A stretch of 64,000 nt of DNA from Monocercomonoides exilis PA203 (GCA_001643675.2 LSRY02000013.1:930001-994000); one strand, 5' to 3'; counted from the first letter of the stretch, positions 1 to 64,000 are shown. A program made the numbers and translations. The notes: generated by a model from the sequence alone, not told the origin.

Positions 1-1770
1 CTGAAGCTGGAAGAAGAACAAAGAGAGCAGGCAGAGAATGAGGCACAGGAACTGTCCAATCAGCTGAGACAGACGCGCACAGCGCTAGTGGCTGCAGAAG
101 CAGACATTGCAACATTACAAGCGATGACTTCACCACAAACAATGAAAGCGAATTCAGATGAAGAAGATAAAAGTGTGTTGGCAGCATCAATGACAGCATC
201 GCCTTTAAGACCAAAGTATGGGCAGGGTGCTTCAGTTCTGTCATCAACTGTGCCATCATCACCAGTCTCAGCAGCATCTTCGTCTCTTGGCTCAACCTCC
301 TCTTCCGTTCAGTCTTCTCTTCCGTTCTCCTCCTCTTCATTCCACTCCCACACATTCCCTTATCTTTCCTCCTCTCTCCGCCGCTTGAACGAGGCGTGCA
401 CTTGCTTGTCTGCAAGAGACACGCTGTGGCTGAAGCTGTCGGATCTGCGGCTGGACCAGCTGTACATTGCACTGAAGAAGGACGATGCGAAAGACCAGGA
501 AACACAGAGAAGTCTGATGATGCAGGCAGAAGAGACAGAGAAAGGCATAAGAGAGTGTGTGGGGAGGATAAGGGCGTGGGGGGAGAGGCTGAAGCAGATT
601 GAGAGAGGGCAGGCTGTGGAAGAGAAGGAAGACGAGAAAAGAGGAAGAGCATTTGCGAAGGATTTGAAGGGAAACAAAGCAAAAGGTGCTGCAAAAGGCA
701 AACTTGAGGGAAGAAGAGGAAAAGAAGCAGAGAAGGAGAAGAAAGAGGAGGAACAAGGAGATGTGATGACGTTGGATCCAGCAGCTGTTCCGATGGAAGT
801 TGTGCTTCAACATCTGTACAACACTCGCATAGAAACAACTCAACAGAGGAAGAAGAAGGGGAAAGAGGAAGAAAATGTCGAAAGCGATGAGACGAAACAA
901 AACGATTTATCAATCACAAGGGAAAAAGCAATCAAAGAAGACAATAACGAAGAAGACGAAGAAGAAGACATTCCTGTTTATCTTCCCCCAAGTGGCGGAA
1001 GCGACAAGAAGGCGTTTGGCTTTGCATTGCGCCTGGCAAGCGATGCGACAGTTGAACTTAGACGCATGTTGGAGTCAGTCATCAGTGGAATGGACGAACT
1101 GAATGGCAAAGTGGCAGAGGCAGAGAATTCAGCAGCAGATGCGAAGAGGAAAGCGGAGGACATGCAGAGGGAAAAGGAGGCGAAAGAGGAGCTGCTGAAA
1201 GAAGTGGCGCAGAAGATGAAAGACGAAGTGGATGCGAGAGAAAAAGCAGTGGAGCAGGCGTATCAGGAAGTGAATGCGCTGAAGAAGGAGGTGGAGAAGA
1301 GGGATGTGGAAGATGCATTGACGATGAGGGTGCGAAGGAGAAGCAAAGACAAAGCAGGCGAGGGAAAAGAAGTGAGGAGGCAGTTGCTGAAGGAAGAAGG
1401 CATCATTGGAGATGAAACAGAAGAAGGCACAGAAGAGGATAGCAGCGAAGAGGAAAAAGATGAAGATGAAATTGAGAAGATGGAGACAGTTGCTGTGATG
1501 CTGATGCCACTCAAACAAGAAACAGTGCAAATTGATTCATTCAAACAAAGCGAGGAAATAAAAGAAGAAGAGACAGAAAATCAGGTGATTGTGGAAGATT
1601 CGTCGAATAACTTGACTGAAAAGGAAAACGCTGAGGAAGAGCTTCCAACAACCAAAGAAGAAACTGAAGAAATTGTTCAACAAACAAATATTGTTGGTGA
1701 AGAAGAGGAAGATGATGCAAATAACCAGCCAGAGGAAATGAAAGAAGAGGAACAAACAGAAAATTTATAA
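1..1770 (+). CDS. 3' part of a large coiled-coil, Glu/Lys-rich protein (5'-truncated by the window)
   Basis: Frame is open from base 1 to TAA at 1768-1770; charged coiled-coil-like segments, a Ser-rich tract and an acidic tail; no recognisable domain. Confidence 0.8.
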   Translation: MKLEEEQREQAENEAQELSNQLRQTRTALVAAEADIATLQAMTSPQTMKANSDEEDKSVLAASMTASPLRPKYGQGASVLSSTVPSSPVSAASSSLGSTSSSVQSSLPFSSSSFHSHTFPYLSSSLRRLNEACTCLSARDTLWLKLSDLRLDQLYIALKKDDAKDQETQRSLMMQAEETEKGIRECVGRIRAWGERLKQIERGQAVEEKEDEKRGRAFAKDLKGNKAKGAAKGKLEGRRGKEAEKEKKEEEQGDVMTLDPAAVPMEVVLQHLYNTRIETTQQRKKKGKEEENVESDETKQNDLSITREKAIKEDNNEEDEEEDIPVYLPPSGGSDKKAFGFALRLASDATVELRRMLESVISGMDELNGKVAEAENSAADAKRKAEDMQREKEAKEELLKEVAQKMKDEVDAREKAVEQAYQEVNALKKEVEKRDVEDALTMRVRRRSKDKAGEGKEVRRQLLKEEGIIGDETEEGTEEDSSEEEKDEDEIEKMETVAVMLMPLKQETVQIDSFKQSEEIKEEETENQVIVEDSSNNLTEKENAEEELPTTKEETEEIVQQTNIVGEEEEDDANNQPEEMKEEEQTENL

Positions 1771-2046
1771 AAGGCTAAATCTTTAACAAGAACAATAAAT
1801 GCTCATTGACAAACTCAGCAATAAAAAAAAGTATTTTTTATGTTATTCAGAGTAGTTTTGAAAAATGTGGAAAATTTAGTTTTGTTTTTTTTGATCTTTC
1901 ACTTTATCTCACTCTATCTCGTTTCACGAAATTTTATATCTCTTTTCATGACACCATTTTTTTTTATTTCTATAATCGTTTTTATTATTTCAAAACACAT
2001 TCAAAACATAAGATAGCTTTTTTTTCTAAAAATTTAAACCCTTAAA

Positions 2047-3173
2047 ATGGAAATAGACTCCAAAGAAAGTGTTCATGCGGCTTTAAGGCCAATATATTGC
2101 GAAATAGGATGGAACGAACATGCTCAAGGTTCATCTGTCTTTACAATTGGAGAGACAAAAATCTTGTGTTCTGTGTATGAAATATGAAAATTAAAAATTG
2201 AATTTTTCACTGATTTCTCCTTGTGAAATGACATAAATTTAGTTTTGGTCCAAAAGAAAAATCAAGAACAACAAAGGCACAAGATTCTGAATTAGCATGC
2301 ACTGTGTCTCGTCTCCATTACTCTGACGTCATTCAACAAGTTTAATCCAAAATTTTGGGCACTTTCAAGGAAATTCATTTTTGTTTTTTTTGTTTTTCAT
2401 AGGAAGATATAGAATTGTCATTTCCTGATCCAGAAAAAAGCGAAGCAATGCATACTATGTCGACTAAGGAAAGGATAAAGCAAAGTACACGTTCACAGAC
2501 ATATAGAAGGAATCAATTTTCCACAGTGTTACAAAACGATTCAAAAATAAATACAATAGACACAAAAATTTCTGACCAAGTTATTACTGCAGTAAGAAGT
2601 GCAATTAGAGGGGAGATATATCAAAAATCAAGTATTGAGATTGCAATTGTTGTCTTATCTGATGACGGAGGTGTTTATGCTGCATGTGTGAATGCTGCAT
2701 GCCTTGCACTAACAGATGCAGGAGTCGAATTGCATTCACTTATTTGTGCCTGCAATGTTGCAATCTGCTCTGATTCTTTATCGGAAGCTTCAAAAGGAAT
2801 TGAATATTATGTTGATCCTTCACTGGAAGTAATGAAAGATGCATCTGGATCAGTGTCAATTAGTTCCTTGTGGGATGTTAACGAGTTTCTCGAAAAAGAA
2901 AAAAAAGAAAAGGAAGAACCTTCAAAAGAAGTTATTGTTGACATCAGAAAACCCACCATCACATCACTTCACACAGATGGAGTTCTCAAATCAGATGAAA
3001 TCGATCAAGTTTGATTGAAACATTGCGTTTTTTGTAACAAAAATTTCTATCTTATATGTAATATTTATTTTTGAATATTTATTTGACAGGCGATAGTTCT
3101 GTGTTTGAGTGGATGCCAAAGCATAGGGAAAGTGATGAGAGATGTCATACTCACTTCGCATATCACTGAATAA
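2047..3173 (+). CDS. RNA exosome core subunit, RNase PH-like (Mtr3/Rrp41/Rrp46 group), 4 exons
   Basis: Exons ~2047-2174, 2243-2339, 2403-3008, 3090-3173 with GT..AG introns. Spliced product has LRPIYCEIG..AQGSS..GETKILCSVFGPKE and KSSIEIAIVVLSDDGGVYAACVNAACLALTDAGV, typical RNase PH motifs. Confidence 0.88.
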
Positions 3174-3362
3174 ACAATTTCAATTTCAATTCATTTTTTA
3201 TTTCATAAAGCTTTATTTTTTTTTTTTTTTTTTTTTGAAAAAATAAGTATTTTTGATTGATTCATAAAAGTTTTCATAAAAACCTTCAGAAAAATGAAAA
3301 AGAAAAGAAATAAAATATATGAAATGATTTAAGTATTCAAAAAAACAAACAAATTTTAATAA

Positions 3363-4959
3363 TCAATTATCTTCCTCATCATCATTTTCCTCTTCTTCTT
3401 CTCTTCCTTCATCTTCCTCCTCTCCTTCACCTTCACCTTCTTGTTCCTCCTCTTCTTCTAATTGTCTCAGCCTCTCTTCTTCTCTTCGTGTGCGTTCAAG
3501 TATCCTCTCTTGTTTCTCTCTTTCCTTTTGTTCCAATTCTTCCGCAATTCTCTTCTCTCTTTCTTCTCGTTTCATCACCAGCCTTTCTCTTTCCTCCTCT
3601 TTCTCCATCATCGACTGCTCAACCACTTTCTTCTGCTGCTCTTCAGCTGTCTGCTCTTCTTCACTTCCAATGCTCCTTCCTTCTGCAATTGCATAGCAAA
3701 GTGCCGTGTGCCTCTCTGCTCCTCGCCTAAGCGATGCCTCAAGAATTGACGAGACAAGCTGGCGAGCTGTCTGTCTTTGCTGCAGCTTCCGCTCAGTCTC
3801 ACCCAACAACCACGGGATAAATGTGCTTGTAAGCTGCTGCATACGAGCATCTGCAAAGAAGCCGGCTGATTGCAGCGAGCCATTCACGGCAGAAGGAAGC
3901 GATTTCAGCAAGTCGTGTGCAAAAGCCACAGCCATAACTTTGGATCCCACAACGCGCTCTTTCTCTTTCCTCTCTCGTTCTTGCGCCAAACGTCTTTCCT
4001 TCTCTTCCCATCTGCGGGCTTCTCTCTCCTCCTCCTCTCTGACAATACGTTCTTCTTCTTCTCTGCGCTCTCTCATTTCTTCGCGTGCCATTCTCATTCC
4101 TCTAATTTCCTCTTCTTCCATAACTTCAAGAAGTGATTGCTCCAAAGTCTTCCCAATCAAAACTTCCAAAAGCGGCTCACTAAAACAGAATTGTTTTATA
4201 TTTCAAAGGAGAATTGTAATGATAAATATTGATTTAAGTTTAATGATAATTCTCATCTTGCAAACCATTCAAAATCAAAATCAAAGAAATCATCATCAAT
4301 CTGAGTTCCTGCATCAACCCCGGTTTTAATGGGATTAAAGACAGGAACAGTTGGCTGATCAAGAAAATAATCTGTTTGAGTTTGTACATCAAACTCGGGC
4401 ACTTTATCTGAAAGTTCTTCAAGATATTGTTCAGTTTGAACATCTAAAAATATTTGAATATAAATCATTATTTTTTCATGCTCTTAAGAAGGAGCGTCAA
4501 ACCTATATGAACACGTCCAGGAATCACAGCAGCTTCAGAATCAATTTGTTGAAAAATATCTTCCTCTCTTTTTTGAATACGACGGGTTCGTTTCATTGTT
4601 GCTTTTTTCAAACGCTGAGCTTCTTCTTCTGCATTCTAAAAGTCAAACGAGAAGTTTGACAATAAACGAAGGATCAACAAGCATAAAATTAATAAATTTT
4701 GAAATCGAAATGCATTTCATGAAGAGTTAACGAACAATTGGACCAATGTGTGGTGCATATGTATTTCCTCTTTTTATGCGTCTATCGAACATCATATTAC
4801 CATACCCCCGTTGTCCTTCGCTACAGAAAAATAAAACAAATATATAAATGATTCTGTTTTAGTAAGCGTGTTTACAAACTTTTGTCCAGGAGTACGATAT
4901 TTAACTTGAGTTTGCACAGCTTGTGGTGCACTTGAATAAGAATATTGAGCGTTTTGCAT
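3363..4959 (-). CDS. RSP3: Radial spoke protein 3 (flagellar), 5 exons
   Basis: Exons ~4959-4880, 4820-4736, 4635-4503, 4443-4266, 4179-3363. RSP3 motifs NMMFDRRIKRGNTYA, DVQTEQYLEELSD, QTQTDYFLD, KTGVDAGTQI and DFDFECEPLLEVLIGKTLEQSLLEVMEEEE. Confidence 0.92.
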
Positions 4960-5177
4960 AGCTTCTCAGGCAAGCAGTTGAAAACCGATAATGCCCACTA
5001 TTTTTTTTGTCAGAAAAATTGGATGGAATGATTGAAACAAATAATCTATGCATCGTTGTTTGCAATGAAAAACAAAACAAAAATTGAAAGAGAATAAAAA
5101 ATTCTTCAAGTCTTTCATTCGAATGAATAAAATATTATAGGTTTAGTGAATGATATACTTTTGTTTGCTCAAGTTTG

Positions 5178-7427
5178 ATGCAAGATTTACAAGACGATGA
5201 CGAAGCATTGAACAGAGCTTTAATGCTTTCATTTCAAGTGGATAGGCAACTTGATAGAGATGATGAGACCATTCAAATTGGACTGGTGAATATTTTAGAT
5301 ATTTTTCCAGATATTGATGACGAGTTTGCAATAAATTTGCTTGTTGAAAATTCCACAAAACCAAATATGCTTGAAATAGTCATTGAAATGATTACAAATT
5401 TGGGAGATGATTATCCAAAAAAAGAAATTGAAGCATCAAGTGATGTTGATTTTTCTGCACCATCCGAGCAAATTCCAACTCCTCCTGCTGAACCGGTTGA
5501 CTTTCAAGAATTTAAGACGTTAGTTAAAGATCAAGATGCTCGAAGTGCAAAATCGTATCTATTTCACGCCTTTCCATTTTATGATAATACTATTCATTCA
5601 ACTGTGTTGGAATTTTACAAATATCATATCACTCCTTCATGGTGCTTTTTATGGAATTTGCATTGCAAATTGGAAGAAGCTATTTTGGATTTGGAAGGTT
5701 GTAATTTGATTACGAAAAGTGTCAATTGCTCTTCGCCTCTCAAATCTGAAAAGCAAAGTCCAAGTCCTCTTTCCGTAACGTCATCTCCAAATAGATCCTC
5801 TCCTCCACCTCTTTTACCTCCACTTCCTCAATCCCCAAATCTTCGAGGGTGCCAGCTGAGTCAATCAAAAAAAATTAAAAGATTCTTATCAATATCACCT
5901 CCACTGGAATCCTCCCCTCTTAAAAGCTATTCCACTTCTCCATCGTTTCATGATATCACAGCTACTGCATCTACAGCTCAATGTTATACTGCACCTCCGT
6001 CTTCCTGCTCTCCTTCATCTTCTTCGCCAGTTTCATATTCACCTTCACCTTCACCAACACTTCCATCATCATCCGCAATCACACCACCTTCTTCCAGTCT
6101 GTCATCTTCATTCATATTCCTTCCTCCGCCTGTGGCCAAAGAGCCTCCCATCACAGAAAGCAGACTTCTAGCAGCGCAAATAAAGCCGTCTCTGCCTATT
6201 TCTCCGCTGGATGATTCAACATTCAGTGAAGAGTTTCTCCGAGAGCTGAAGGCGTTACGGATCATTCAGGAGAAGAAAGTGAAGGAGCGTGCGGAGAAGA
6301 TGCAGCTGCGGAGTGAGGTGTGGCTGGTGCGCGAGCGAATGCGCAGGATTGAGGAAAGGAAGAAAAAGAAAGAGAGAGGCGAGACGGTTGAGGAAGATGA
6401 CTCAGACCTGGTTGAAATATTGCTCAACAAGTTCGACGAAGTGTATCCAGACAAAAGTTTGTTTTGTTCATCGTCATCTACCTCTTCCTCCTCCTCCTCT
6501 TCCTCTTCCTCTTCCTCTTCCTCTTCCTCTCTCTTCTTCTCTCCGCCTGTGATTGAGTCTCCTGAGGACCTCGCCTTCTGGGAGTGTTCCATCTGCTTTG
6601 AAGAGGAGCGTGTCTTCTCAGAGAAAGTGCTCTGCGACGAAGGCCACGCTGTCTGCCGGAGCTGCGTCAAGTCGATCGTGGAGCAAGCCATTTCGCTAGG
6701 CGAGCCCGTCATTAAGTGCCCGTGCTGTCCGAACGGCAGCAGTCACCAGGTGTACTCCGAGGCAGCGGTGAAGCAGGCGCTGCAGTTCGACACGACAGAC
6801 CTGTATGAGAAGTGGTCGCAGCTGATGGCGTCGCACAACGTGCGGATGTCCGGCCTCCCGTGCTACAACTGCCCGTTCTGCATCTACGCAGAGGCGTTCG
6901 ATAGGCAGGACGAGATTCCGCCTGTTTTCCACTGCCAAAACCCGAGCTGCGGCAAAGTCATCTGCACGCTCTGCAACAAAGAGGCGCATGAAGGTGGGCC
7001 GGAGGACTGCCCAGTCTTTCAGGAGAAAGAGAGAGAAGACTCGCTGGCGCACTATATTGAGCAGGCGATCGATGAGACGTGGATCCGCTACTGCCCGCGG
7101 TGCAGGAAGGCGATTGTGAAGGACGGCGGGTGCAACCACATCCGGTGCCAGTGCGAGTTCAACTTCTGCTCGATCTGCCGGCAGCCCATCGACCAGGACA
7201 ACCCTTCGACGCATTTCGGGCAGGCACCGACGTTCTGCAAGCAGTACACTGACCAGGAAGAGGACGATGAGAGGGAGCTGATGGCGGCTGCGAGGAAAGC
7301 GGAGGCAGAGTGGAAGGCGAGGCACCCGGAGTATCAGGGCGAGTCGGAGAGGGTGAAGCAGCTGGCGAGGCAGATTCTGAGGAAGAAGAGAGGGGAAGAT
7401 GTGGATGTTGGGAATGCTTCTGGTTAG
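5178..7427 (+). CDS. RBR (RING1-IBR-RING2) E3 ubiquitin ligase, RNF216/TRIAD-like
   Basis: ATG at 5178. N-terminal UIM-like DDDEALNRALMLS; RING1 CSIC..CDEGHAVCRSC..CPCC; IBR CPFC..CQNPSCGKVICTLC..H..C; RING2 CPRC..IVKDGGCNHIRCQC..FCSIC with the catalytic Cys. Confidence 0.92.
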   Translation: MQDLQDDDEALNRALMLSFQVDRQLDRDDETIQIGLVNILDIFPDIDDEFAINLLVENSTKPNMLEIVIEMITNLGDDYPKKEIEASSDVDFSAPSEQIPTPPAEPVDFQEFKTLVKDQDARSAKSYLFHAFPFYDNTIHSTVLEFYKYHITPSWCFLWNLHCKLEEAILDLEGCNLITKSVNCSSPLKSEKQSPSPLSVTSSPNRSSPPPLLPPLPQSPNLRGCQLSQSKKIKRFLSISPPLESSPLKSYSTSPSFHDITATASTAQCYTAPPSSCSPSSSSPVSYSPSPSPTLPSSSAITPPSSSLSSSFIFLPPPVAKEPPITESRLLAAQIKPSLPISPLDDSTFSEEFLRELKALRIIQEKKVKERAEKMQLRSEVWLVRERMRRIEERKKKKERGETVEEDDSDLVEILLNKFDEVYPDKSLFCSSSSTSSSSSSSSSSSSSSSSLFFSPPVIESPEDLAFWECSICFEEERVFSEKVLCDEGHAVCRSCVKSIVEQAISLGEPVIKCPCCPNGSSHQVYSEAAVKQALQFDTTDLYEKWSQLMASHNVRMSGLPCYNCPFCIYAEAFDRQDEIPPVFHCQNPSCGKVICTLCNKEAHEGGPEDCPVFQEKEREDSLAHYIEQAIDETWIRYCPRCRKAIVKDGGCNHIRCQCEFNFCSICRQPIDQDNPSTHFGQAPTFCKQYTDQEEDDERELMAAARKAEAEWKARHPEYQGESERVKQLARQILRKKRGEDVDVGNASG

Positions 7428-8396
7428 AAGTTGATTTCTTTTCTTTTTTTTTATAAAATGGAATATCAATTTAATTTTTTGTTTTGTTTTTTGAATGTAA
7501 TTTTTATTTTATTTGTTATTTTTCCTTTTTTTTTTCATGAACACAGAAAGACTTTGTTGTTATTGGAATGCATATACTTGCAAAGGTTATTGGGAAGATT
7601 TGTCAACGTTATTGTTATGTTTAGTTTTGTTTATTTAATTGTTATCTTTTTTTGAGTTTTCTATTGCTTCTAATTATTTTCAAGCATTTATTTTTGACTT
7701 CACATTTTGGCAAATAAAAATTTGGCATTTTTTGAGCAATGCCCCAGAATAAATAAACTTTTTTGTTTCTTTTTTGAATCGAAAGATTATATTTATTAAA
7801 AAAGACAGCTACATCGAAATGCTTTTACTAAATGTTGCAGAATGAGTTTGAGATTTAAGTTCAGATTTTTTGATAGTCTTTTGTGTGTTGAGTTGTGAAG
7901 TCTTATTCATTTTCAAATATTTTTTTTTCCTGAAATGTGTCAAACGAATTATTGTATCTATGATAACGTATATTGATAGGGTCATATTTTTATTGGGGTT
8001 CAATAAAGATATGACGTATTTTTTCAAAGTCAAAAATTAGAGAATGAATAAAAAAGCAATGAATCCTTTTAGAAAAAATCATCGTTATAAATTCCTAAAT
8101 TCTCGTTTTGAACAATTTATAGAACAAGAGCTTGTAAGCAGGTCATAAAGGCTTGACTCAAGATTTTTGGAAATTTTTTTGGAAGTTAGAAAAAGAAGAA
8201 TATTGAATGAAATCACTTTTCCATATCACTTAATCTTCACATTTGACTTCAACGATGTTTTTTTATTCTCTTTAATGAGATTAACATCGCAATTAATCAA
8301 TCATAGCTGCCTATCCATTCATTCAATATTCGAAAGCTTTAATTTATTAAACAGTCAATTCTTGAAATATGATGAATATCTCTTTCATTTCATTGT

Positions 8397-58124: not shown

Positions 58125-59553
58125 ATGAAGACCATGGAAGTTACATGTCCTGAAAAATTTCAAGGTTTTTGTACATTTCAGAATTTGAATCTTTAATGAT
58201 AAGATTTTTTTCTTTTTTTCTTTTTCTTTTGAAGAATTGCTTGATGAACTGGGGTGTTGTTCAGAAATTGAGCAAAAACAGATTATTGAAGAAATGAATG
58301 AAGCGATTGATAGAATGGATGAAAAAGAATTTGAATCAATTTTAGCAACAGAACTGTTCAATAAAGTGGACAAAATGATTAAAGAAAAGAATCTGTCAAT
58401 GGAAAATGCAATTTTGCTTCTGAAGCATGTTGGATATTACAAAGTTCTTTTGAACTTATGGTGTTATGAATTTTATGATTCCTTGTTATGCGGAAGATTT
58501 GAAAAGCTGATTATTGAAGAAGAAAAGAAGAATGAAGAAAAAAATGAAAATCTTCTTGTTGATCTTTGTGAATGTTATGCAGTGCTTAACGGTTATTATA
58601 TCTCGAGAGAGGAATTGTTTTTTATTTGTGTGTCTTGCCTTTTGAAAGTTGCATTGAAGAAAGAGGAAGATGAGACAACGCAAAAAGAAGTGGAAATGGC
58701 ATTGCTTGCTTTGACTTGCTTGCGTGAAGGAATTGTATGACCGTATCTTTGCTTTTTTTGAGTTAAATATTTTTCCTTCATTTTTTACAAACAGGAGATC
58801 AAAAAAAAGAAGAATTTGAAAAAGATTAAAGGAATAATCAAATATCATCAGAAACATCACAATCATACGCATGTTGCATATCAATCTGCTTGGAATTTAT
58901 TAATCATAAAAAATACTTTAGATAAAAACTATGAAAAACTGATTGTGAATGAACTGCATTTTGGAATGGAAGCGACAAGAGAGTTGGAAGAGCTTGTGAG
59001 ATGCGTGGATTGGAAGAAAAAAGAAAAAGATTCAGAAAGAAGAATGAAAATGATTGATTTTGCAATTGTGGACAGATGGTTGGACATAATTGAAATTTTC
59101 TTTGAATATTTCGAGATTAATAGTGAAGAATTTGCTGATTTGACTGGTTGCATGATAAGATTGTGCAGAGTAACAAGGGGGAATCGCAGTGATGTTGTCT
59201 ATCGATGTTGTAGCATTTTTGTGAAAATGATTATTTTCCAGCCAAATTTGATTGTTTTCAATGATTTGATGAAAAGCGGAGTTTTTGATTTCATTTTGGA
59301 GGAAGTTCACAATCAAACATTTAATGACTGTATGACAGGTGAATTCTTAATATTCTTTTTGAATGTTTCAAGGAAATTGAAAGAAAAGGAGAAAGACGAA
59401 AATGAGGAAGTGAAAAGAATCTTGTTTGATAAGATGGAAGAAGAAGGATTTGAGGATGTTATCGCAAGCTTTCATGAAATGTTTAATTTTCTCAGTAGTG
59501 AATATTTCTATGGATTATCTTTGAATGTTTCTGATTATTATTTGAATGCTTGA
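58125..59553 (+). CDS. Lineage-specific helical (ARM-like) family member, copy 4
   Basis: Exons ~58125-58164, 58235-58734, 58795-59553 join in frame (MKTMEVTCPEKFQE/LLDELGCC..); all family motifs present. Confidence 0.82.
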
Positions 59554-60034
59554 GGAAGTGAGATCTTTTTTATTTTGAGACACGAAAATTGAACTTTTTC
59601 TTCTTTTCGTGTCAATTCACTCATCAGGTTGCTCGAAAAATATTTTTAAAAAAATTGAATAGATTTTTTTATTTTTCCAATTTTTTGAATTTCATTGGCA
59701 CTTTTTTGTTTGTAATAGCCAATCGTTCAAATTACAAAAACTTAAATAGTCCTTTCACTTGGACTAACTTCTCAACAATATGAGAATATCTAATTATTTG
59801 TTCATATTATATATATATATATATATGGATATGTATATTTATTCTTTAGAAGTTACAAATTACAATGCCTATCAAACATTACGAGAAATGTTCCAATTTA
59901 AGAACTTTTTGTGGCATTTATTTCATATTTCTTTTTAATTTTAATAAAGTTGGAATGTGTTTGGCTGAACTTTTTTGACAATATTATTTGATATTCTGTT
60001 TGAAAGCTGCTCCTTCTGGTTTGGTATTTTCATA

Positions 60035-62555
60035 TCATTCATTATTAAAGCTATGTGGTGTTCTGCTCAGAAGAGAATGAGGAGAAAAAATAAAAAAACA
60101 AAATAATGAAATGAAAAAAACATATGGATCAACTTTCAACAAAATAATTAGTATAATTTTCTCGACTTTTAAAAAAAAAATCGTATTAACTCCCATCTCC
60201 ATGCAGCATTTCAATCCCAAAATGTAATCTTCATAACCTTCTTCCTCCATCTTTTCAAATATCTTTCGTTATATCTCTTTCTGTTCTGAATTCTCTTTCT
60301 CGGTTCCAATGTTTTCTTTCATTCTTTCATTAAGCTTTTCACAGAAATGAAAGCAATGAGCATTTATGTCATAGATCTCTTTTGAATGAACTGTTTCCCA
60401 TAAAGTGATGTCAACTGAACCTTCATTCACCAATGTATCAACTTTTGTGGCTCTGTTGTTCACTGCTCTTTCAAATGGATAAACACATTTGCAGCATATT
60501 TTTTTGTTTTTTCCCTTTGCTTCTTTACACAGTTTCACAAGACTTCCGATTAGTTCGGAATATTCTTCATTGCACAATTGACACAAGGTCAAGTGAAATC
60601 CAATCAAACGAAGCCATTTCAAAGAATACACATCTCTTTCGTTTCTTCTTCAACTTCTTCAACTTCTTCTTCTTCTCCTTCTTTCTCTCTCTTCCAATTC
60701 ATGCATTCCCTCAATTCATCCAGTTCTCTTTCAACCTCTTTTGCAAAATGGAGTTCTTTCGTAATAAATAGCCCCAGTTTTTCTTCATTCGATTTGTTTT
60801 TCAAAAGCATCCATGCTGACTGACAGGCAAGCCGTGCAAGGGTGTGATGCTGTTGATAATATTCGATGATTTCTGTAATTTCTTCCAAATATAGTTCTCT
60901 TTCCATTCCCTCTTCAATTGTTCGTGAAATATGTGCGAAATAAATAACAATTTCACAAACTTCACGAAATATTAGTCTGTTCAATGCAAGAAAAACCTCT
61001 TCCCATTCTTTTTGTGTTTCCTCGTCTTCATCTTTGTTCAATTCAATTTTCAGAAGACAAGGCACATAGGGTCAACTTTTTAATGGGACTTTTTTACTTA
61101 TTGGCACTTTTTATGTTTGAAGCTGCCAATCAACAAAAAGTCCCCAATGAATTTCAACACATACACCACACTTTTTAACTTGTTTCAGCCGATATTTTTG
61201 CAGTTTGTTTTTATATTTTTGTTCATTAGTCATTGAGAAATTTCGTTTTTTTGTTAAATTTGAATGGACATTTACCAGCCAACCAGGCAACGCCCATGAA
61301 ATCGGGGACATGTTTTGAATAGCTTTTACTAAGATCTATCTATTTTTATATTCTTTTTTTCACAAACACTTTTTTCTTGTTTTTTTTCACATTTCATTTT
61401 TTTAACAAAATGCAAACATAAAACCGATTATTTCTTTGTTTATATAATGAAATGATAAAACTAAAAATATGATATGAAAAACAAATGCATTTTTTATGAT
61501 GTGTTGAAAAAATAAAACATTGTTTTTTTCTATTTGTCTTGAACAGCCAAATGGTACCAACTGCATTTGATCTTTGATCAAACTTTTGTTGTTTTGATGA
61601 TTTCTTAACAATTAGAAAATTTAAATATTCAACTTTTTACACACATCATCATAAGTATGTTTATTTTACATATCATATTTTTAGTTTTATCATTTCATTA
61701 TATAAACAAAGAAATAATCGGTTTTATGTTTGCATTTTGTTAAAAAAATGAAATGTGAAAAAAAACAAGAAAAAAGTGTTTGTGAAAAAAAGAATATAAA
61801 AATAGATAGATCTTAGTAAAAGCTATTCAAAACATGTCCCCGATTTCATGGGCGTTGCCTGGTTGGCTGGTAAATGTCCATTCAAATTTAACAAAAAAAC
61901 GAAATTTCTCAATGACTAATGAACAAAAATATAAAAACAAACTGCAAAAATATCGGCTGAAACAAGTTAAAAAGTGTGGTGTATGTGTTGAAATTCATTG
62001 GGGACTTTTTGTTGATTGGCAGCTTCAAACATAAAAAGTGCCAATAAGTAAAAAAGTCCCATTAAAAAGTTGACCCTTCATTGAAACCAATTCGTTTGGC
62101 AGGATACATAAACCATTATGCAGCATCAAATAGCATTCACAAAGTCCAACAAGAAGATTTTCGTTTTTCTCACATATTTTTTTTGTTCTCTTCAATTATC
62201 ATCCTTTCAAATCTTTCATACACAGAAAATTCTTCAAAGAATACGTTCCATATTCTTTTTAGTACTTTGCAACATCTTAGATACTTTAACAATAATGATG
62301 TGTTTTCCATTGTTATTTTCTTTTCTTCAATCATTTCATGAATTTTGTTGAAAATTTTTGTCGTGAAAACAGTTTCGAATTCATTTCCATCCATTCAATC
62401 AATTACTTCATTCATTTCTTCGATTTTCTGTTTCTGCTCTTCCTCATTTCAATGTTCATTCTTAGAAAACAATTCTTCATTAAATAAAGATAAAAATTTA
62501 AATAGCATCAATCAAGAATTCAAATGCAACAACATTAGCACACCTGTAAACTTTC
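60035..62555 (-). pseudogene. ARM-like family copy 5, disrupted by stops, frameshifts and two insertions
   Basis: Fragments 62170-62394, 60619-61065, 60269-60631 and 60035-60250 in different frames; split by the element at 61069-62076; 5' end cut at ~62556. Confidence 0.85.
61069..62076. mobile_element. Non-autonomous foldback/MITE-like DNA transposon (1008 bp) with 408-bp TIRs
   Basis: TIRs 61069-61476 and 61669-62076; termini GGGTCAAC..GTTGACCC; interrupts coding sequence between ..NELVSM and YVPCLLK.. Confidence 0.92.
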
Positions 62556-64000
62556 TTGATAGAACGCAGTGAGACAGGATTTGCTCCGAAATAATGAGTA
62601 TTGTTCACGATTTATGGGCGGTTTAAGTGAAAACTTCGCCCTCCCAAAATGACGTGGGAAAAAGGGCGAGATGAAAATATAGACAAAAACATTTAGACAA
62701 AAATAAGTGTATTTTGAATTGTCCGCTTCACTTCACCACCTTCTTCGCCTTTTTGCCTTGGTCACGAAGACCAGAGGGCAGGGGACATTGCCCCTCGGAG
62801 CTTTCTCCTGCAGTCAGTGCAGGGATCCGGTGAGGCGAATATAATCAAGGAGCAGAAAGAAAAACCACTCTCGCTTCCGCGAGGCGTGGAAAAGAAAACT
62901 GCATGTTATGCGCTCTGCCTCCTGCTCTTCTGCTGCATCAGCAGAGCAACCCCAATCATCACACACTGCATATTAAATATTCAATTCTTCTCTGTAAAAA
63001 CAATAATAATCTTACAAAGGAGTAGGATCATGCTTGAACTTTTTATTTGTTTCCATGTTTCTCAAAAAAGGTTCTTGGTGTACATTAATATCTTCGGGCG
63101 GTTGATCTTTTCCTCTATCCTTCTATATCTCGCCCTTTTTCTCGTCATATTCCTCCAAATATGTTTCTCTCTGACGCACCCAGCCGCTCTGAGTCTCTCC
63201 ATCCGCGTTAGTATTATTTCGGAGCAAATCCTGTCTCACTGCGTTCTATCAATTCGCAATAGAGCGAATATCCGAACGCAAGAAGCAGGTTTGCTCCTCA
63301 ATAATGAGTTTTGAAATCCCTTTTTAAATATTTATTCTTACTTAATTTTATATTTATTTATTTATATATAATGATCTTAAACCCTCCTGCCTAGCACGTC
63401 ATCGTGCGGCGGATGATTAGAGAGCCTGCGGATGAAGGTGCGGCCATTGTCTCTACTCCCTTTATTTCTTGAGGTGTTTCCGAGGTGTTCTCGACCGGGA
63501 ATTCGTTCCTCTTGAGTTCTTTATTATATAACCTTGACTTCTTTCTCCATTCTTCCTCCGGTCTGTGCCCTTCTTTCTCTGTGAGGCAGTGCGTCTGCTT
63601 CCAGTCAGTTCGCTTCCGCTGCTGGGAATTATGAGGGATGTTCTCCGACTCTCGAGTGATCGGAATAAGTTGTGTTGTGATTGAGTTCTTTCTCTCAACT
63701 TTCTCTCTTCTCAGCTCAGGAAGTCTTGTCTCTTTAAATTCTTCCCTTTTCTCATATCTTCATCTCCCCCAGCTTCTGATATATGTATATATATATATAT
63801 ACATATTTGATACAATATTTCATCTCTGAATTTGCATTCTCGATTCACATATCCTTCATTCCTCCACTTATATCCAACTTTTCTTCTTCTCCACGAGGGG
63901 GTTCTTGAAAGTCGATCGTCAACAGGATCCATTTCATATCTTGAACAAGAAAAATGTTTTAAATTTTCTGTCCACTCTTGATCCTTGCTCCCCTCTTGCG
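62556..64000 (-). mobile_element. Putative 3' end of a DIRS-type (tyrosine-recombinase) retroelement: terminal repeat plus internal complementary region, continuing beyond the window
   Basis: Perfect 40-bp inverted match between 62556-62595 and 63213-63252, followed closely by a diverged copy of the terminus (63274-63309); GC-rich hairpins; decayed purine-rich coding-like sequence on the minus strand. Confidence 0.55.

Follow-up and report, generated by a model that had tools for sequence, protein, structure and literature searches.

A stretch of 64,000 nucleotides from Monocercomonoides exilis PA203 (hereafter the window, C7:930001-994000) carries close to its end two 40-nt sequences that are perfectly complementary to each other, and a copy of a host gene family breaks off directly in front of the first of them. 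This raises the question whether the two repeats enclose a small element of their own or whether they belong to one end of a much larger element, the other end of which lies beyond the window. The preliminary description of this locus had favoured the latter, and had predicted from an internal complementary region (ICR) how the unseen end would read. The nanopore assembly of the genome (82,301,135 bp in 101 contigs) was searched for copies, and the locus was followed beyond the window. This extended locus, L031, comprises the window end and 8 kb beyond it, and its positions are converted as L031 p = window 62000 + p. The reading that we prefer, with a probability of about 0.9, is that window 62556-63313 represents the 3' end of a DIRS1-like tyrosine recombinase (YR) retrotransposon on the minus strand, and that this copy lacks ORFs, is non-autonomous and was spread via the proteins of full-length relatives.

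Extent and architecture of the element

The two arms, 62556-62595 and 63213-63252, are complementary at 40 of 40 positions, as had been reported, and lie 617 nt apart. A 26-mer of the arm occurs at only these two sites in the window, with 0 occurrences expected from shuffled sequences. The second, diverged end-like sequence that had been noted directly after 63252 is also present, as 63290-63313 is an 88% direct copy of 62580-62603. In the sequence beyond the window the predicted far terminus was found. The stretch 63250-63313 is the reverse complement of L031 5033-5096 at 62 of 64 positions, and the 27-mer TTCGCAATAGAGCGAATATCCGAACGC, which had been predicted for the minus strand, is located at L031 5067-5093 with 0 mismatches. 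The element comprises 4,541 bp (L031 556-5096, C7:992556-997096, corresponding to window 62556 to the equivalent of 67096), and its far end is located 3.1 kb past the window edge. The alignments of at least 40 genomic copies begin at about 62552-62556 and all extend beyond 63320, while the far-end matches of the genomic copies all terminate at L031 5093-5096. The features of the locus, given in window positions, are as follows.

62080-62555, minus strand: interrupted host gene family copy on the left side of the insertion, sharing 92% identity with the paralogue C7:480824-481298
62556-64000, minus strand: in-window part (3' part) of the probable non-autonomous DIRS1-like element, delimited by genomic copies, the stops of the far-end matches and the empty-site paralogue
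62556-62558, minus strand: right-end trinucleotide TTG (CAA on the sense strand), one of the two flanking copies of the junction
62556-62595, minus strand: right terminus (rTer), 40/40 complementary to the rICR, with variants that co-vary with the rICR in 28 copies
62562-62640, minus strand: right inverted terminal repeat (ITR), with a divergent part at about 62562-62595 and a conserved part from 62596 to about 62627
62596-63212, minus strand: hairpin-rich non-coding 3' module between rICR and right terminus, including the stem arms 62658-62672 and 63127-63141
63213-63252, minus strand: rICR, the right half of the ICR, 100% complementary to 62556-62595
63250-63252, minus strand: 3-bp circular junction, CAA on the plus strand (complement of TTG), where the ICR halves overlap
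63250-63313, minus strand: lICR, the left half of the ICR, 62/64 (97%) complementary to L031 5033-5096
63483-64000, continuing to the equivalent of 64925, minus strand: decayed tyrosine recombinase remnant, detected by tblastn with the recombinase ORFs of relatives
equivalent of 64916-65215, minus strand: remnant of an RNase H tail, detected by tblastn

The right ITR shows an inverted match of 79 nt at 87% with L031 4996-5072; within it, 62580-62640 matches L031 4996-5056 in inverted orientation over 61 nt at 90%, and GAGTATTGTTCACGATTTATGGGCGGTTTAAG is common to the left end and the right ITR. The ITRs are unequal at their outer tips, in agreement with the preliminary description, with an extension of 21 nt on the left and of about 3-6 nt on the right. 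Both halves of the ICR find their partner in the element: the rICR pairs with the right terminus, and the lICR pairs with the far end at a distance of 3.7 kb. The two inverted-repeat arms at the ICR, L031 1213-1252 and 1250-1313, have exactly three bases, CAA, in common.

Insertion site and junction trinucleotide

The host paralogue C7:480824-481298 is free of the element and runs on into sequence that matches L031 5115-5697. In this closest paralogue (L042, C7:480601-481900) the sequence is collinear with the left flank at 92% up to window 62554 and, 23 bases further, is collinear at 85% with the sequence after the far end, starting at L031 5115. The whole 4.5 kb are absent and a single TTG is found at the insertion site. 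With one TTG kept, filled and empty site can be aligned without any gap; it is on this gapless length match, in the one empty site examined (n = 1), that the TTG register is based, and only 8 of the 19 junction-side bases are conserved there. The expectations for the host gene were borne out as well: its homology ends at 62554/62555, does not resume after 63252 and returns at L031 5097 (C7:997097, window equivalent 67097), and by comparison with L042 the missing host sequence adjoins the far terminus.

In the window copy TTG is present at the near end (62556-62558) and again after GCGAA at the far end, and one TTG equivalent lies between the halves of the ICR. For DIRS1-like elements it has been described that the circular junction of 3 bp recombines with the same trinucleotide in the genome, which is then found on both sides of the element without a TSD (PMC3266345; PMC7192593). 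TTG at both ends, the single TTG in the empty site and the one in the ICR therefore correspond to the published DIRS1-like 3-bp circular junction. The near-end trinucleotide is TTG in 24 of 28 copies. On the far side, GCGAA is followed by TT and one more base in 8 of 11 copies, and the trinucleotides seen there are TTG, TTA, TTT, TAG, ATA and CTT. This variation is due either to a loose homology requirement or to mutations after insertion.

The host family into which the element was inserted spans window 58816-62555 and L031 5097-5700. It is lineage-specific, a first look gave more than 1,000 candidates genome-wide, and no Pfam family was found for the proteins of the host flank. The flanks of several other DIRS copies match the same host family, at varying distances and in varying orientations.

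Two further elements were observed in the neighbourhood. A foldback element of 1,010 bp is located at window 61068-62077, about 480 bp upstream of the DIRS insertion and in the same host gene copy. Its arms of 470 nt are 96% complementary and enclose a loop of 70 nt, and its outer 178 bp have paired copies on C91, C27, C5 and C62. It is absent from the paralogue L042, in which its flanks join directly. The other one is a second YR retrotransposon of a different family, which lies just past the resumed host sequence in opposite orientation (L031 7125-9767, plus strand, C7:999125-1001767). Its amino acid identity to the family studied here is 33-39% in the RT region and 24% in a recombinase-like stretch.

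Coding relatives and the non-coding lineage of the window copy

From the genomic copies a sample of 11 full copies, 13 far ends and 28 aligned near ends was read. The layout of terminus, ICR and terminus was present in all 11 full copies, the sizes of which range from 4.3 to 6.5 kb. Four copies of 5.9-6.5 kb gave tblastn matches to RT and recombinase ORFs, and the strand concerned corresponds to the minus strand of the window. The shorter copies are without RT in tblastn. Two copies, L022 (C1:242090-242871, minus strand) and L024 (C1:258937-259718, plus strand), lie about 17 kb apart in opposite orientation and have identical 20-nt flanks, which suggests an inverted segmental duplication that carried the element rather than two insertions.

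Pfam scans of the relatives L037 and L038 detected RVT_1, RT_RNaseH and Phage_integrase domains. Phage_integrase (PF00589) reached 34.7 and 30.6 bits at a cut-off of 27.1, and the pol of the relatives reached 97.8 bits for RVT_1, 38.5 for RT_RNaseH and 31.5 for RT_RNaseH_2. In L038 the ORF 1742-4936, with the YR at residues 749-910, overlaps the RT ORF 4276-6045. In L037 the ORFs 3110-5704 and 5810-7504, which share one frame, overlap the pol ORF 3072-6146. Such a long overlap of recombinase and pol ORFs is a described trait of DIRS1-like elements (PMC3266345). The relatives are part of the same assembly and contain ORFs of at least 1,000 aa in the standard code. A methyltransferase domain is expected behind RNase H in the pol of DIRS1-like elements; in searches against Pfam (general profiles, E up to 10) and against PDB sequences, the 187 aa that follow RNase H in L037 had no match.

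The N-terminal part of the pol ORF carries an array of 36-nt (12-aa) tandem repeats that is open in two frames (L037 about 3100-3770, plus strand; L038 about 5500-6040, minus strand; L032 5724-5867). The array is smaller in the subfamily of the window copy. Pfam matches of pol to MgtE_N fall on this repeat region and were taken as spurious.

In the window copy the longest open stretch on the minus strand has 122 codons, and all three stop codons are present in all six frames. When the ORFs of the relatives were used in tblastn, no RT and no gag similarity was detected in this copy. What is left is the tail of RNase H and the recombinase remnant (L031 1456-2925, minus strand), which shows 34-40% amino acid identity and is broken across several frames. 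The genes that the preliminary description had expected on the minus strand (RT, RNase H and YR) are thus found in the full-length relatives, whereas in the window copy RT and gag are missing and the YR is a remnant. An antisense ORF at 62817-63314 (plus strand, 165 aa) was considered and rejected as a gene; it belongs to no Pfam family, and L037 has only shorter, separate ORFs at this place.

The recombinase remnant contains about 25 in-frame stops, 21 of which are common to L032 (on C35) and L033 (on C21). These two siblings are 96.6-97.9% identical to the window copy and are located in unrelated flanks. Because so many stops are shared by siblings at unrelated sites, the lineage had lost its coding capacity before it multiplied. 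For the 5' region of the subfamily, matches of 92% or more are found at a minimum of 8 loci. Since the window copy lacks RT and its relatives possess it, it qualifies as a non-autonomous member of the family: it has no functional ORFs, it has kept the termini and the ICR, and independent insertions carry the same defects. Most likely, this dead lineage was mobilised in trans by the enzymes of the relatives.

Classification, replication route and competing explanations

The element is assigned to its class by domain content and architecture. ITRs with non-identical tips, an ICR of two halves near the 3' end, a junction trinucleotide, a YR as well as RT with RNase H (both in the relatives) and the overlap of recombinase and pol were all found. 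The architecture is canonical for DIRS1-like elements and corresponds to the textbook case of the class.

Like DIRS-1 of Dictyostelium discoideum (Cappello model; PMC7192593), the element has inverted, non-identical terminal repeats and a right-end ICR, the adjacent halves of which are complementary to the left and right outer tips. Judged from the domains of the relatives, it would also be integrated by a tyrosine recombinase as DIRS-1 is. However, the ITR homology extends over about 80 nt, in contrast to the LTRs of about 330 bp in DIRS-1, and about 530 nt of conserved non-ITR sequence are located between rICR and right ITR. The ICR halves measure 64 + 40 nt (101) instead of 33 + 55 (88). 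The left extension of 21 nt, the metamonad host and the lack of ORFs in the window copy are further differences to DIRS-1. The DIRS1-like superfamily as surveyed by Piednoel et al. 2011 (PMC3266345) shares with the element the layout lITR-lICR-rICR-rITR with left and right extensions, and an ITR that consists of a 'divergent' part constrained by the ICR and a 'conserved' part. It also shares the overlap of the ICR halves at a 3-bp junction and a trinucleotide found on both flanks of the element and a single time in the target. The summed ICR of 101 nt lies within the reported range of 85-130 nt. In the same survey a left extension was found only in fungi and amoebozoa, whereas it measures 21 nt here. 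As far as the description of TOC1 from Chlamydomonas reinhardtii goes (PMC9940879), this element is comparable as a non-coding derivative of the DIRS order that uses the enzymes of autonomous relatives; by the same description, it differs in its unrelated lineage and host. PAT-like/Ngaro elements likewise encode RT, RNase H and YR, and circular intermediates have been proposed for them. Their repeats are split direct repeats, whereas the terminal and internal repeats are all inverted here, which excludes membership in this group. The PAT-like/Ngaro layout was therefore rejected, the only direct match being the ITR-like core inside the ICR.

From the homology of the architecture with Dictyostelium DIRS-1 we infer how such an element could multiply. 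A sub-genomic minus-strand RNA would be transcribed from within the left ITR and would be reverse-transcribed in trans into single-stranded cDNA. The ends of this cDNA would then anneal to the two halves of the ICR, by which the missing tips could be templated and the ends juxtaposed, and a circle carrying the junction ...GCGAA-TTG-ATAG... would be formed. Finally, a helper tyrosine recombinase would recombine the TTG of the circle with a genomic TTG, which would leave TTG on both sides and no true TSD. Transcription, complementation in trans, the circular intermediate and the recombination step are all modelled on DIRS-1. The sequence features predicted by this mechanism were all found, namely an ICR in two halves that overlap by 3 bp, the trinucleotide at the flanks, a single trinucleotide in the empty site and the co-variation of ICR and terminus. 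In DIRS-1 itself the ICR is essential for retrotransposition and the RT acts in trans (PMC7192593).

The 3' module (62596-63212) is well conserved, with column majorities of 73-99% across the 28 copies of alignment A1. The complete 3' region of 758 bp (62556-63313, comprising module, right terminus and ICR) is 88-95% identical to the relatives, whereas the recombinase region reaches only 66-79%. The predicted fold of this 758-nt region is far better than that of shuffled sequence (z = -9.9), and the MFE fold of the window copy includes a stem of 40 bp and a stem of 15 bp. The latter had been proposed as an extension of the fold-back. The segments 62658-62672 and 63127-63141 are indeed an exact 15-bp inverted match, and at least 13 of the 15 positions are paired in 24 of 28 copies. 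However, the changes in this stem are only disruptive or wobble and none is compensatory. RNAalifold on the 28 copies gave a covariation term of -0.74, with compensatory changes in 6 of 165 pairs; because the module is too conserved, this does not prove a structure. The proposed extension is thus confirmed only as a conserved match that forms part of the predicted fold. A search of 62400-64000 against Rfam revealed no family, the sole match being StyR-143 at chance level (17.9 bits at a gathering score of 176).

The perfect 40-bp inverted repeat could also be explained by a MITE or foldback DNA element of 697 bp (62556-63252) with 40-bp TIRs, a 3-bp duplication of TTC and unrelated sequence beside it. 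In the window copy TTC indeed flanks this unit on both sides (62553-62555 and 63253-63255) and mimics a 3-bp TSD. However, the sequence that follows the 697-bp unit is always TTCGCAATAG; since the left flanks differ between copies and the internal TTC is constant, the flanking TTC is a chance match. Of the 40 scored copies, none ends at 63252 and each extends past it into the interior, so that the scenario which the preliminary description had opposed to its own reading has failed. The 28-mer of the ICR junction has 79 genomic occurrences with up to three mismatches (34 exact, 0 in controls), and the terminus 18-mer has 154, about two per ICR junction, which shows that solo 697-bp units do not occur. 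Furthermore, the empty paralogue lacks the whole 4.5 kb and not merely 697 bp, and we regard the MITE as extremely improbable. This particular copy might also have arrived by segmental duplication or gene conversion of the host region instead of its own retrotransposition. The flank is part of a host repeat family of very large size, and inverted duplications carrying DIRS copies exist, as in the case of L022 and L024 with their identical flanks. Such an origin is nevertheless very improbable, as the closest host paralogue is element-free and reaches only 85-92% identity, the siblings are much closer to the window copy than this and have unrelated flanks, and the boundaries of the insertion coincide exactly with the termini defined by the ICR.

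Another possibility is that the copy is autonomous, or was so recently, and that nanopore errors, introns or a variant code obscure its ORFs. Some frameshifts could be errors, given that the assembly was built from nanopore data (PMC8767320), and the similarity to the recombinase is still detectable. Nanopore indel errors can however not explain shared stops of the substitution type, and three independent copies agree in 21 of the 25 stops. Stops of all three kinds interrupt every frame, RT and gag similarity is absent and not merely frameshifted, and the relatives are open over at least 1,000 aa in the same assembly under the standard code. We consider hidden coding capacity highly unlikely, and the copy remains best described as an ORF-less member of the family. 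A last alternative concerns the function of the ICR. The complementarity of terminus and ICR might mainly serve a fold-back of RNA or cDNA, for self-priming or packaging, instead of providing a template from which the ends are rebuilt. The strong folding of the 758-nt region with its two stems and the higher conservation of the module compared with coding sequence would fit to this, and the way in which reverse transcription of DIRS-1 is primed is unknown (PMC7192593). The lICR, however, pairs with the far end 3.7 kb off, and the halves meet in a junction of 3 bp that corresponds to the trinucleotide of the insertion, as the templating and circle model predicts. A DIRS-1 from which the ICR has been deleted is blocked at a step that follows cDNA synthesis (PMC7192593), and the covariation within the module is weak. 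A main role in fold-back is therefore unlikely, but fold-back and templating could coexist.

Apart from the templating role of the ICR, the hairpin-rich module of about 620 nt may act in cis as a recognition or self-priming structure for DIRS reverse transcription, and ORF-less lineages may persist because their module matches that of the helpers. We put this forward only tentatively and consider it rather doubtful. If true, it would provide a concrete RNA/cDNA element for the priming step of DIRS replication.

In the survey of 2011 it was uncertain whether Excavata contain DIRS1-like elements (PMC3266345). The genome paper of M. exilis does not mention DIRS, leaves most repeats unclassified and reports 1.41 Mbp of LTR elements, a minor part of the classified repeats (PMC8767320). 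The copies described here document canonical, recently active DIRS1-like elements in a metamonad, a host group with little earlier documentation of such elements, including the lineage without ORFs that was most likely trans-mobilised. They leave the understanding of the DIRS mechanism unchanged. For annotation it is useful that a DIRS element with its other end unseen can be located and delimited from the ICR alone.

The copies that carry an ICR, at least 79 in number, also provide natural co-variation data on the templating between ICR and terminus and on the 3-bp junction rule. In alignment A1 four variant states of the rICR are found again in the right terminus of the same copy. The states of rICR and right terminus are GAGACAGG versus GAGCAGG, GGATTT versus GGTTTT versus GGTTT, and GAAATAAT versus GAGATAAT. 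The rICR and terminus of one copy match each other better than pairs combined from different copies (permutation p of about 5e-5, uncorrected for the relatedness of the copies). The far end and the lICR co-vary likewise, with GGATATTC versus GTATATTC. In three copies, L013, L021 and L025, rICR and right terminus belong to different subtypes (A1 columns 84-125 versus 769-812), which suggests that these copies are mosaics in which subfamilies were combined by recombination or by template switching.
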